NCBI RefSeq assembly: GCF_006345805.1
Contig: NC_043019.1
Coordinates: 27,713,360-27,777,359 of the forward strand
Direction of reading: 5' to 3'
Source: Octopus sinensis
Lineage: Eukaryota
Length of the DNA stretch: 64,000 bases
In this document: positions 36,501 to 48,500 of the stretch, piece after piece
Layout: every line of letters starts with the position of its first letter
Position numbering within the stretch: the first letter of the stretch is position 1
Notes under the pieces: model-generated
The model's database searches: none
Told to the model about the DNA's origin: nothing
What the model saw: only the letters and a program-made list of their open reading frames with translations
Made by a program: the position numbers and the translations under genes

Positions 36501-39500
36501 AAATCTTAATTCTGTTACTCTGTAAAATAATATTTAATTTGTTTAAATGTACACAAATGCATAAAAATGATTTTTAATTCCATTAGACATTCTAAAATAC
36601 TATTAAATTTCATTCAATTTTAAAAAAGTAATATCGGACATAATTTACAGGATGACCCGATATATATATATATATTCATAATAAATGAAAAATGTCTGAT
36701 AAATAAACAAATGACATAACATACACTGAGTGTACAACCAGATGGGAGACATACACAGAAATTCTCTAATTCTTCATCAGTTATCAACCAAATGGTATTA
36801 CTCAGTTTCGCACCATTAGTGATAATTCACACACACACACACACACACCACACACACACACACACACACACACTCATGCACACACGAACACACACAAACA
36901 TACACACACATATACAGATATATATATATATATATTCATGTATATATAATGTGTATGTGTGTGTGAAGCTGCAAAGAAAAGTTGATCATATATAACGGTG
37001 CAATTAAATTAAAGATACGTACCAGTTCTTACAGGAATACCAGTTGTTACAGGAATACCAGTTGTTACAGGAACCGTCACTGCAAAAATAGAACAAAAAC
37101 AATAGATTAGGCATCATTAACTTCACTATCATTATCATCATCATCATCATCACATTCAGCATCATCATCAACAAAATTGTTTTTTGTAGACAATTTTGAA
37201 GTTGTAACCAGCAAAGAGAATATCCATCCATCTATCCACCCATCCATCCATCCATCCACACATCTACCCACCCACTTGAGTGAATGTGTGTATGTTTTTG
37301 TGTTGGTGCATGCATGTATTTTATGCTTTTGTCTACATCTGTATATACAAGTATATGTAGGTGTATATGTATGTATATTTATTTTGCCTATATATGCATA
37401 TATTTGTGTATGGACACATTAACAAGCATGCTTATACGTGTGTATATCTGTGTATATATATGTGTATATTTCTATATTTTTTATGTTGTTTCTTTGGTGT
37501 ATTTGCATGTACATATGTGTATTTTTCTTTTGGTGGATGTGTATATATTATGTGTGTATTTGTATGTATGTGTGTATAAATGTGTGTATGTGTAAATTTC
37601 ATATATATGTGTGTGTATATATGTATATATATATATATGTATGTGTGTGAGTATGCTTATGTATATGTATATGTGTGTGTATATATGCTTGTTTTTTGTA
37701 TGTATGTGTGTATATATATATTTATGTTTGTGTGTATACATCTTTTCTATCACTTGCAAATTTATAATAATTTTCTCCTTCATATATTCGTTTTTATTCC
37801 TATTTTTTCTGGTTGTCTCTCCTACCCTGGGATAGACTTTGAGTAAGGTAACTCTCTTGAATACACCAGCCGGTCCTGTCTGTGATCAATGTTTTTTCCT
37901 TATTAAGTTCTCTTTGGTTTTTTTTTCTCTGCTTGTATGTACATTTTTACTTAAATATTGTACCTTTTCAAACATAGTCTTGCCTATCACTATTAGCCAC
38001 GAGTAATATATATATTTTTTCGTTTTTCAATATTAATATGTATATGTATAACTCGCGATGGTTCTTTTCTGCCAGTGCACTTGTTGCATTATATTTTACT
38101 ATACATATGTGGCCCTGTTTACATTATACTTCATTTCGATCTGTTAGTATTTCTTTACCATATCTGTTAGATTTTAATTTTTATTTTTATGTTATAGTTT
38201 ACTGCACGTGTAGACTTGCATATACATTGATATGTCTATCTTTTTTCCCCTTTCGTCTCTCTCACAATCATTATTACTGTTATTTTTTCCCTTTTACAAC
38301 TTGTTTGTAAATATCCAATTTTTCCCTATTACCCCATTTGTATTCTCCCTTATCATATCTTATTTCAATTTATTTTATTTTATTAAACCTGTTTTGATGG
38401 CTTTCCAAAAATTCCTCACACTGATGAGAATGACAAGACAAATTTAATTACAATTACTATGATTATAATTTTTTTCTTACATATTTGCATTGTCCTTTGA
38501 AACATGTGCATGTATTGAATCCACTTTTGTATTAAATCTAATTTTGTTTCAACATCTTTTTCTCCTCCATTTTTTAATACTTGTTTATAGTATAAATTGA
38601 ACCAATCCTATGACTAATCGAAATTGAACCAATCCTATGACTGGCACCCGGCAGATGCCAGGACCCCTGGACTGGAGATACGTAAAAAGCACTATCCGAA
38701 TCGTGGCCGATGCCAGTGCCGCCTCAACTGGTTTCCGTATCGGTGGCACGTAAAAAGCACCATCCGAATCGTGGCCGAAGCCAGTGCTGCCTCGACTGGC
38801 TTCCGTGCAGGTGGCACGTAAAATGCACCAATCCGACCGTGGCCAATGCCAGCCTCACCTGGCACCAGTGCAGGTGGCACGTAAAAAGCACCCACTACAC
38901 TCACGGAGTGGTTGGCGTTAGGAAGGGCATCCAGCTGTAGAAACATTGCCAGATAAGACCGGAGCCTGGTGCAGCCTTCTGGCTTCCCAGATCCCCGGTC
39001 GAACCGTCCAACCCATGCTAGCATGGAGAACAGACGTTAAACGATGATGATGATACCTATAACGATATTTTTCATCTACTATTTTCATATTCTCATTACT
39101 TGCTCTGGCTGTTTTTTATGAATATGATGAATCTTTACTAGAAATCATTCTTTCTCTCATTTTGGATCTTTCAAAAGGTTTGAATTGTTCTTTTTGAACT
39201 TATTTTTTCCCACATGCATATATATATATATACATATATATATATCTATATATATATATATACTATATATATATATATATATATATATATATATATATAT
39301 ATATATATATAATATATATATATATATGTATATGTATATATATGTATATGTATATATATATAGATATATATATATATAGATATATATATATATATACATA
39401 TATATATATATATATATGGATATATATATATATTTATATATATAAATGTATTTAGATATATACAGACATATATATATATATATATATATATATATATCTA

Positions 39501-45500: not shown

Positions 45501-48500
45501 TGCAAACAAAAGATGATCCTATACAATAATAGTAATAAAGAATTAAAGGCACATACCAGTTGTTCCAGGTGTTACAACTGAAATAAAAGAGAAAAACAAA
45601 GATGTTAGACATCACCAACTTCACTATCATCAACATCAAGATCATCATCATTATCAACATCATCATCATCATCATCAATATCATTATCTTCCTTATGATC
45701 AGCATCATAATCAACTTAATGTTTTACTAAAAGAATTTTGAAGTTGTAACCCCCAAAGAGAATATTAATTCTCACAAAAATATATTATCAACATTTCAAA
45801 CTTGTTGTGTCCCATTAACTCCAGTGTGTACTTAAAATTATTCATGTTCTGCCAGTTTAGCTGATTATCAAATTCATCTGATGGAGTACAGCTATGCTGG
45901 ACAGTTTGACAGGAGCTGGCAAATCAGAAGACTGCGCCAAGTTCTGCTGTCTGAGTTGGTAAGGTTTCTACAGCTGAATCTCCTTCCTAACCACTTTACA
46001 GAGTGTAGTGGGTGCTTTTTACATGGCGCCAGCAGCAGTGAGGTCATCAAACAACTAAAAGACAAGATCTCTTGACTGAGGTTGAGGGTAATATTGAGGT
46101 AGGTGGCTTTGTGCCAGGTGATTATTAGATTGCTAAAGAATAAGGATACTGCAAGATGATAGGATAATAGAAGGAGAAATGAAAGAGAAAATTCCAAAGA
46201 GTACAAAATTCTGTAACACTATCTTTGTCCATTTTCTAAAATGGACAAAGATATTGCTACAGAACTTATGTATGAGAATTAAGAAGCTGCTCTCAATACA
46301 CAATGCACACCAACCTAAAAGTAATATCAACAGGCTCTTCCTACATTAAAAGGAAGGAGGCAGAAGACTGTTAAATGTAGAAGACACTGTTGGAAATATT
46401 ATATTCAGTTTGAAAAATTATGTTGTATGTAGTGAAGAAGGAATACTATGTCCGAAAATTTACTAAAACAGTAGGAGGATTCAAGAATACAAGGAAAAAC
46501 AACAGAACAAGGAGCTGGAAAGAAATGGAATTACATGGCCAATTCATGCAACAATGATGGCTGTTGAAAGTAAAGAACACTGGTTGTGATTAATGGATGG
46601 GAACCTGAAACAAGGCACTAAATTGCTAGTTATAGCTGTTGAAGAACAAGCCATTAAATAGAAGGAATCAATATTCAATGTTATGTAACGGTATTCAATT
46701 ATTGAGATTTAAATTTCAATAGATCATGCAAGTTTGTTTATTTGTTAGGAATAAGAGAAAGCAAACAGACTGATATAAATCATGCACAAAGTACTTACAG
46801 TCCACTTTCAATATGGCTGTGATTGACAAAAGTGTCTTGGATTCTGTTGAATTCATTATTTCAAAGATTATTGATAAATCAATTTTTATAATTGGTACGT
46901 CAGGTTCCTTAGGATTTGGTTTTACCACATTAAATATAATAATAAATCTTATAATGAGACTGCCATTTCTGAAATAGTACAGAATGACAGAATGACAGAA
47001 TGACAGTGGTAGATAGTGAGAGGAAAAGAAAGAGAGTGTTAGAACATATGTATGCAAGCATGCATGTATGTATGTATGTATGTATGTATGTATGTATGTA
47101 TGTATGTATGTATGTATGTATGTATGTATGTATTTATGTATGTCTGTATGTGGCAACTGGTGGTGGTGTAACACACCATACTGATCATATCTGTCGGGCA
47201 TGTGGAAGAGAGTGTAATTCGTCAGGAGGACTTAAACGACATGCAAAGGTACATGAAACCCAGTTACAACTACAGCCGGCTATTACCAGTAAAGGTTTTA
47301 GTTGCCAATTTTGTACAAGACATTGTAGATCTTTAGCTGGGCTAAAAAGTCACATTCGATCACAGCACCAGTAACAGTTAAGCTTCGTGCAATGGCCATA
47401 CTCGATAACGAGGGGGCAGCCATAATGTATGTATGTATGTATGTATGTATGTATGTATGTATGTATGTATGTATGTATATACAAGTGTGTATATATAAGT
47501 GCATATATATATGTGTGTATGTATGTGTGTGTGTGTGTGTGTTTATATACACATACACATACGCATCTTGAGTAGATAGATAAAGATTAAAGTAAAAATG
47601 AAAAGGCACACTGTTTTGAATCACTTGCAAAGACATTTAATTTAGAGAGAGAAAGTAGACATATAAAGTTTCTTACAACTGTTTCTTGAATAGTGAAACA
47701 TGAGGATCAACATATACATACATACCTATATATGCGTGTATGCATGGGATATATATATATATACATATATATATATATATATTATATATATATATATTAT
47801 ATATATATTATATATATATATATATATATATATACTATATATATATATATATATATATATATAAAATATTAGAAAAAAAACACCTTTTATCAATTCAAAA
47901 TGAATAATTAAATTACACCATCTAGAAAATTACATATAATAGAAAAGTTAAAATTAAAATAACGATTAAAAAGTAAAGATTAAGTAAATTACAAGAATAA
48001 TGTAATGTATAAAATAGGTATAAATATGTATAAATTTGTATGAATTGTTTATATATATATTTCTTTATTGCCCACAAGGAGCTAAACACAGAGGGGACAA
48101 ACAAGGACAGACAAAGGGATTAAGTCGATTACATCGACCTCAGTGCATAACTGGTACCTATTTTATACATTACATTATTCTTGTAATTTACTTAATCTTT
48201 ACTTTTTAATTGTTATTTTAATTTTAACTTTTCTATTATATGTAACTAGCAGTATCGCCCGGCATTGCTCGGGTTTGTAAGGGAAATAACTATAAAGCAT
48301 TTTTAGAGAGTTATAGCCAAAAAACAGCAAAAAGTGCATTAAAAATGGAAAAAAAATTATGGTAAATTTTTTTTTAAATCGTTGACTCATTGTAGACATT
48401 TTTAGAGAGTTACTTCCCTTATATTAAAAAATATGCATTAAAATGGAAAAAAATGATGGTAAATTATTTTTAAAATCATAGACTCATCATAGACGTGCGC

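Follow-up and report, generated by a model that had tools for sequence, protein, structure and literature searches.

In CD46 (MCP), the STP exons A, B and C are short (~45 nt), and each encodes one Ser/Thr/Pro-rich unit of an extracellular stalk that connects the folded modules with the membrane. The STP exons can be combined in frame, their alternative splicing is documented, and the stalk that they encode is variably O-glycosylated (PMC7709105). A similar design was encountered in 64,000 nucleotides of Octopus sinensis DNA (assembly GCF_006345805.1, contig NC_043019.1, positions 27,713,360 to 27,777,359; this whole stretch is referred to below as the window), in which four small segments, designated c1 to c4, encode a Pro/Thr-rich hinge between two SEA domains. 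These segments are likely to represent spliced coding microexons of a single Octopus gene, the hinge having grown by cassette duplication, with constitutive inclusion as the default. The hinge is unlike the CD46 stalk in the size of its exons (21 nt) and in its host, a protein with SEA, LDLa and MAM domains, as opposed to the CCP modules of CD46.

The MSD insert of NCAM bears O-glycans and functions as a hinge. This linker is added to the extracellular part of NCAM, a multidomain membrane protein, by a series of very small exons (exons 12A-12D, MSD1) that are reported to behave as one unit (PMC2120321). In contrast to the NCAM exons, which are not paralogous cassettes with homologous introns, the exons of the octopus hinge are duplicates of one another. 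The micro-exon genes (MEGs) of schistosomes evolve with conserved flanks and a fast-changing exon core, as do the hinge cassettes described below. Long introns lie between their short symmetric exons (3-81 bp), and their small secreted products are encoded mostly by microexons (PMC10526429). MEGs are restricted to flatworms, however, and share no sequence homology with the hinge, and in the octopus gene this construction is confined to the linkers of a large multidomain type II membrane protein. The likeness to MEGs drawn in the original prediction, which was made from the sequence alone, is thus apt as an analogy of exon design and does not extend to membership: the window exons for SEA, mucin, LDLa and MAM measure 68-918 nt each, and the product is a large membrane protein rather than a small secreted one encoded mostly by short symmetric exons.

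The octopus gene also resembles the SEA-mucin proteins (MUC1, MUC16, enteropeptidase and other type II transmembrane serine proteases (TTSPs), and agrin), in which SEA domains are likewise flanked by Pro/Thr/Ser-rich sequence, O-glycosylated in those proteins. MUC16 repeats its SEA modules with linkers, and the order transmembrane segment (TM)-SEA-LDLa-MAM seen here matches that of enteropeptidase-like proteases. The mucin sequence of SEA-mucin proteins is normally carried by large tandem-repeat exons, as it is in this gene at 25714-26631 and in Argonauta. The inter-SEA hinge, with its four exons over 8.5 kb, departs from this rule. It is a paralogous microexon chain that supplies an inter-domain Pro/Thr linker; exon duplication itself is not unprecedented, and the general knowledge of mucin stalks or of microexons is left unchanged by this case. 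Its interest lies in offering a clean and datable instance of a linker extended one 7-aa unit at a time, with the intron recognition signals copied along, together with an exon whose own donor was engulfed when a tandem duplication enlarged it.

Four small exons between two SEA domains

The gene under study is encoded on the minus strand, and the coordinates given below are those of the window unless another sequence is named. The hinge lies between exon SEA1c (170 nt, 46968-46799), the last of the first SEA domain, and exon SEA2a (110 nt, 35457-35348). SEA1c was assigned by its sequence, its boundaries, its Pfam SEA match and its tblastn match to an Octopus vulgaris protein, P0001. Three of the hinge exons measure 21 nt: c1 (45577-45557), which encodes (F)VTPGTT, and c2 (44187-44167) and c3 (40991-40971), which are identical in sequence and encode AAPPETT. 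The fourth, c4 (37079-37023), measures 57 nt and encodes 19 aa. All four are of phase 1-1, and in position, length and phase they are as originally predicted. A long pyrimidine tract and AG precede each exon, and the donor that follows reads GTATGT after c1-c3 and GTACGT after c4; with their splice sites, c1 reads ttcag/TTGTAACACCTGGAACAACTG/gtatgt, c2 reads tttag/CTGCGCCACCTGAAACAACTG/gtatgt, and the 3' end of c4 reads AAGAACTG/gtacgt. Microexons are commonly taken to be ≤27-30 nt long, and at most 51 nt, with canonical splice sites. Exons c1-c3 fall within this definition in both length and splice sites, and c4 has the same 21 nt in O. vulgaris, versus 57 nt in the window.

In total, the four exons contribute 120 nt, or 40 aa, over 8555 bp (28 aa in O. 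vulgaris), in agreement with the earlier figure of ~8.5 kb of DNA for 40 aa between the SEA domains. The SEA domain (PF01390) was detected by Pfam in two stretches of the spliced product, on either side of the hinge (E = 3.3e-26, 91.9 bits, cutoff 26.4). The hinge contains 13 Thr and 8 Pro residues among its 40 aa (52% combined), its units follow the pattern xxPxTT, and it has the Pro/Thr-rich, low-complexity character of a mucin-type (Pro/Thr/Ser) linker. Judging from this composition, the xxPxTT units may be O-glycosylated and may serve to set the distance between the domains.

The reading frame of the hinge is closely defined. Phase 1 is the sole frame open in all four exons, phase 0 being closed in c1 and c4 and phase 2 in c2 and c3, and the same phase is demanded by SEA1c, whose 3' end reads GTG GAC T/gtaagt, and by SEA2a, which starts with AA. 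A direct junction of SEA1c with SEA2a creates a TAA stop (T/AA), and after any of the microexons the junction reads G/AA and encodes Glu. At least one microexon is therefore needed for a protein that runs into SEA2, and it is on account of this stop that constitutive inclusion is taken as the default. Of the 16 possible subsets of the four exons, the 15 that are non-empty stay in frame, as do both internal GT positions of c4. The proposal that any subset could be skipped in frame thus applies to 15 of the 16 subsets and breaks down for the empty one, which gives TAA. The TAA rule was established for the window sequence; in Octopus bimaculoides, Leu takes the place of Phe at the SEA1c/c1 junction.

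The 11.3 kb from SEA1c to SEA2a was scanned with a simple filter for segments of ≤120 nt, divisible by 3 in length and open in phase 1, that have a pyrimidine tract, an AG and a good donor. Five candidates passed the scan, four of which were the hinge exons. The additional candidate (69 nt, 43074-43006) encodes a hydrophobic peptide, ends in T and thereby gives a stop before SEA2a, occurs in no annotated model and is probably a chance pseudo-exon. Recursive splice sites were ruled out, as the bases that follow each AG (TTGTAA, CTGCGC and TGACGG) are not GT and no 5' splice site is regenerated.

The presence of the microexons in annotated proteins strongly suggests that they are included in the mature mRNA, since two pipelines agree in two species and chains of 15- and 21-nt exons are unlikely to be assembled ab initio. 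In the O. vulgaris protein P0001 (225 aa), the sequence ...KVD-FVTPGTT-AAPPETT-AAPPETT-VTVPVTT, with both copies of AAPPETT, was found directly after SEA1c, followed by GMYL-stop. Mapping of the protein to its locus identified this ending as read-through of the c4 donor. P0001 also includes two 15-nt microexons upstream of SEA1. Iso-Seq and RNA-seq evidence was brought together in the O. vulgaris annotation by means of PASA and EVM (PMC10700109, where the data sets are given as PRJNA718058, PRJNA791920, PRJNA547720 and E-MTAB-3957). An exhaustive profile search with P0001 recovered the O. bimaculoides protein A0A0L8GSK0 (P0008), in which SEA1c is followed by ...EVE-LVTVGTT-AAPPQTT, the counterparts of c1 and c2, and then by GMYL-stop. 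P0008 matches SEA1c (58%) better than SEA2c (45%), and 11 of the 14 residues of its hinge are conserved, versus 58% over the whole alignment. Only P0001 or P0008 was returned by the word-indexed protein searches.

The original expectation that standard annotation would miss these exons was correct in part. Two pipelines caught them, yet only in truncated models, and SEA2 occurs in no retrieved protein. The gene is fragmented in both retrieved Octopus annotations, with SEA2 unannotated and the models ending in the microexon chain; for this reason, cephalopod gene sets probably under-report such genes.

Duplicated cassettes and the growth of c4

Each hinge exon lies within a cassette whose intron flanks are homologous to those of the other three. 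Cassette 1 (45216-45884) contains a (GAT)n tract, a CTAAC branch-point-like motif, a pyrimidine tract and a downstream CA-rich tract. Cassette 2 (43904-44549) is homologous to cassette 3 (40656-41345), which has (TA)n microsatellites at both ends. The nearest relative of cassette 4 (36949-37223) is a fifth copy, c0, detected in the O. vulgaris locus used for comparison (L001). The c0 exon (TGGGAATTTCCGAAACAACTG, encoding VGISETT) is located on the gene strand at L001 48571-48591, ~8 kb beyond the window end at 64000. The homology of all four cassettes had been noted in the original prediction, at a size of ~1 kb that proved too large: the shared length is ~0.6 kb between c1 and c3, ~0.65 kb between c2 and c3, and ~0.28 kb for c4.

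Local BLAST alignments of cassettes 2 and 3 showed 90-97% identity. Over the 229 ungapped columns common to six aligned cassette sequences, pairwise identity ranged from 72 to 98% (98% for c2/c3, 81% for c1/c2 and 77% for c4/c0), and the copies were grouped by identity as ((c1,(c2,c3)),(c4,c0)). The four window copies are all in gene orientation, and no further copy of the cassette was found in the 64-kb window. Homologous exons with homologous flanking introns, in the same orientation and the same phase 1-1, are the features of tandem exon duplication, and in this respect the earlier account of the hinge as the outcome of exon-plus-intron duplication was upheld. The chain grew by the copying of a 0.3-0.65-kb cassette.

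Two episodes of duplication may be distinguished. The c0 exon is located upstream of SEA1 and c4 upstream of SEA2, and the 143 nt that directly follow SEA1c share 88% identity with those that follow SEA2c. Owing to the matching positions upstream of the SEA domains, and to the intron carried along in the SEA duplication, c4 and c0 probably go back, as a pair, to the segmental duplication from which SEA2 arose. The c1-c3 copies appear to have arisen through local duplication. In Argonauta hians, the orthologue (P0014) is a single model comprising the TM, one ~30-nt exon, a single SEA domain, two large Pro/Thr/Ser exons, LDLa and MAM, and its single SEA domain matches both SEA1 and SEA2. On this comparison of sequences, the second SEA domain and the microexon chain seem to have arisen in the Octopus lineage.

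The exons and their flanks have diverged in different ways. Among the old paralogues, the exons are free of indels, whereas the flanks contain many. Exon bases 14-21 (AACAACTG) are 100% identical, bases 1-13 are 45% identical and the flanking introns 71-81% (75-81% in the 60 nt on either side), and 2 of the 13 exon-core columns are invariant, versus 72 of the 115 flank columns (Fisher p = 0.002). The constant length, invariant end and variable core, as compared with the flanks, indicate that the exon segment is treated differently from the surrounding intron. The flanks look constrained, and the elements within them may be splice signals needed by a 21-nt exon. Each 21-nt exon would carry its own strong signals inside the duplicated cassette, putatively a CTAAY branch-point-like motif ~28-32 nt before the AG, the long pyrimidine tract, the conserved flanking intron, and the invariant exon end with its donor (AACAACTG/GTATGT).

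An RNA structure that would loop out the microexon was proposed by RNAalifold, which paired the upstream (GAU)n with a downstream AU-rich/AUCAUC tract; this candidate was dropped, as the folding energies of the individual cassettes were no better than those of dinucleotide shuffles (z -0.9 to +0.5). Intronic RNA genes were considered as grounds for the conservation of the flanks, and no Rfam or tRNA matches were found in 27000-47500.

In this genome, exon c4 was also lengthened within the cassette. In O. vulgaris, c4 comprises 21 nt and is followed by gtatgtatc. In the window, its 57 nt consist of the 21-nt core and two 18-nt tandem units (3.0 copies of an 18-nt unit according to Tandem Repeats Finder), each unit spanning 13 exon bases and the first bases of the old donor. 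In both internal copies, at the start of each 18-nt unit, the old donor is weakened to GTATTC through loss of the +5 G, and GTACGT now serves as the donor of the exon. The inserted sequence preserves the reading frame and contributes 12 aa. This structure is explained by an 18-nt tandem duplication across the border between exon and donor.

A second cassette family was observed in the stalk between the TM exon and SEA1, where two 15-nt exons of phase 1-1 encode EAPVT and LAPEP or PAPEP. The two exons are 1.27 kb apart and have near-identical flanks (ttatatttttcag...gtaagtattgaattgaag). One of them is within the window (63251-63237) and its partner was located at L001 56478-56492. The first base of the window copy differs, yielding PAPEP (Pro instead of Leu) where O. 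vulgaris has LAPEP, and both exons are used in the O. vulgaris model P0001.

Competing explanations of the hinge

Several observations weigh against the reading of the segments as constitutively spliced microexons that arose by cassette duplication. Transcript support for the microexons comes via annotated models, not reads. P0001 and P0008 both end by reading into the intron after a microexon (...TTGMYL-stop), and P0001 is not a clean model, with odd internal splice sites in SEA1b and SEA1c. No annotated protein with SEA2 or with the SEA1-SEA2 join was obtained from the word-indexed SEA2 searches or from the exhaustive search in which P0001, with an SEA1 homologous to SEA2, was the query. At the Argonauta locus, no cassette homologues were found, only microsatellite matches, and there is thus no deep conservation. 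The comparison with O. vulgaris showed identical exons and flanks that differ by 1-7%, too close to be informative about selection. Finally, the cassette counts extend to the 64-kb window, L001 and the Argonauta locus only.

Within a spliced hinge, inclusion could also vary with tissue or stage, producing a ladder of linkers in 21-nt steps (within c4, 18-nt steps) and thereby adjusting the length of an O-glycosylated spacer that separates SEA1 from SEA2. Regulated skipping of this kind is possible, and we regard it as doubtful. The all-symmetric exons (phase 1-1, multiples of 3, 15 of 16 subsets in frame) and the two in-frame internal GT sites in c4 would permit it, and the analogues behave in this manner, namely the CD46 STP exons (PMC7709105) and the NCAM MSD exons 12A-D (PMC2120321). 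The only hint of optional use is provided by c0, whose acceptor, donor and phase are intact, yet which is absent from P0001. Phase symmetry, however, is inherited via duplication and is the norm for extracellular modules. The splice sites are uniformly strong, the internal donors of c4 are weak (GTATTC), and the one length difference seen (21 versus 57 nt in c4) is genomic and not due to splicing. None of the recorded isoforms lacks any of c1-c4, and the sole model that reaches c4 includes all four. A bolder version would treat the gene as a membrane protease of MEG-like design, with portable cassettes, introns held constant so that the exons are reliably recognized, a fast 13-nt core, and a stalk varied by DNA duplication or 18-nt expansion together with combinatorial skipping. 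If this were true, the micro-exon-gene strategy would have arisen a second time, independently and outside the parasitic flatworms; we consider this rather unlikely.

The truncated models could be taken at face value, the microexon transcripts ending within the hinge by intron retention or polyadenylation (...TTGMYL-stop) to yield a small TM-SEA1-stalk protein, with SEA2-mucin-LDLa-MAM as a separate unit. Both annotated models do end by reading into a hinge intron, no retrieved model contains SEA2, O. vulgaris has no same-strand gene call over SEA2, and the O. bimaculoides Gnomon isoforms end even earlier, after exon 1. Nevertheless, the read-through follows different microexons in the two species, which resembles assembly truncation; the phases of c4 and SEA2a match perfectly; and the Argonauta orthologue is one continuous TM-SEA-mucin-LDLa-MAM model. 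A separate SEA2 unit would be without a TM of its own or a start exon upstream of SEA2a, and SEA2a cannot be the first coding exon because it opens in phase 1. Two separate products are, on balance, unlikely. Slightly less probable again is that the segments are pseudo-exons, i.e., duplicated intron sequence with splice-like motifs, strung together by predictors and absent from mRNA. The evidence does rest on models and not on inspected reads, both models are fragmentary and imperfect, and a lone 21-nt open frame is likely to occur by chance. Ab initio predictors, on the other hand, very rarely chain 15- and 21-nt exons over 74 kb, and here two pipelines and two species agree. Moreover, exon length is strictly kept despite indels in the flanks, no phase but the required one is open in every copy, and the direct SEA1c-SEA2a splice gives a stop with no other plausible linker exon in the interval.

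A very improbable origin, though one compatible with a coding role at present, is exonization of a mobile element, in which a dispersed repeat (a non-autonomous transposon or SINE-like element; SINE, short interspersed nuclear element) with splice sites was recruited repeatedly. Flanks that are more conserved than the exon core, cassettes bounded by microsatellites, and a locus full of SINEs with a mariner fragment would suit such a history. The cassettes, however, have no terminal inverted repeats that could be found, only flanking (TA)n microsatellites. The five copies in 158 kb are all in this gene, in gene orientation and where a linker exon is needed, and there are no copies elsewhere in the window, L001 or the Argonauta locus.

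The parent gene and its locus

The window is collinear with the O. vulgaris chromosome record OX597836.1 (~97-98% identical) and is rich in microsatellites and SINE-like elements. The gene is predicted to encode a type II membrane protein composed, in order, of an N-terminal TM exon, microexons, SEA1, the hinge, SEA2, a mucin exon, LDLa and MAM. The TM segment is encoded by exon 1 of P0001, outside the window. The first SEA domain includes, in addition to SEA1c, exons SEA1a (59306-59200) and SEA1b (55772-55705), and SEA2a is followed by SEA2b (33253-33186) and SEA2c (28346-28186). Downstream of SEA2c, a conventional mucin exon (26631-25714) contains 10.9 copies of a 54-nt unit with 91% matches, and the LDLa and MAM exons identified by Pfam are downstream of it. 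The same gene therefore encodes Pro/Thr/Ser-rich sequence in both ways, by a microexon chain and by a large tandem-repeat exon.

The N-terminal TM anchor (in P0001) and SEA, LDLa and MAM (in the window) correspond to the anchor and stem of an enteropeptidase-like TTSP. No trypsin-like exon turned up among the long minus-strand frames downstream of the MAM exons, no search aimed at trypsin having been made. In Argonauta, the next gene model encodes SRCR and trypsin domains, and because this adjoining model adds them, the octopus protein is probably an enteropeptidase-like type II membrane protease.

In P0001, an internal donor in SEA1b (AAA/GTAACT; exon at L001 65150-65217) is joined to an internal acceptor in SEA1c (cctaag/GAACCT; exon at L001 73826-73996). 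The join removes the strand ...VTGFANGSLIVRFFIIF... from SEA1 and is either genuine, giving an in-frame isoform, or an artefact of annotation. Across SEA2c and the mucin exon (L001 91677-93807, corresponding to ~28370-26236 of the window), the O. vulgaris annotation has a gene of 323 aa on the opposite strand and calls nothing on the gene strand. The opposite-strand gene was probably called in error because of the repeat exon.

A 599-nt segment, partly SINE-like, is present in the introns after SEA1c (45893-46491) and SEA2c (27449-28047). Its two copies are 99.5% identical, as against 88% for the adjoining 143 nt, the SEA exons being far more diverged, and with the O. vulgaris sequence at the other position each window copy shares ~99.3-99.5% identity. 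This near-identity points to recent gene conversion, to a young insertion or to constraint. A perfect 15-nt inverted repeat (AACAAAACAGGAAAT ... ATTTCCTGTTTTGTT) occurs at 45398-45440, ~120-180 nt downstream of the microexon; a related inverted repeat is recognizable in cassettes 2 and 3 and is absent from c4. The intron between c4 and SEA2a contains an N-terminal fragment of a mariner/Mos1-type transposase (Pfam HTH_48, E = 1e-15) at 36100-36500 on the minus strand. A SINE-like element at 38640-39060, which starts on the minus strand with atcatcatcatcgtttaacg..., contains an internal tandem triplication of 63-68 nt, and related fragments were detected in both orientations at several other places in the window.

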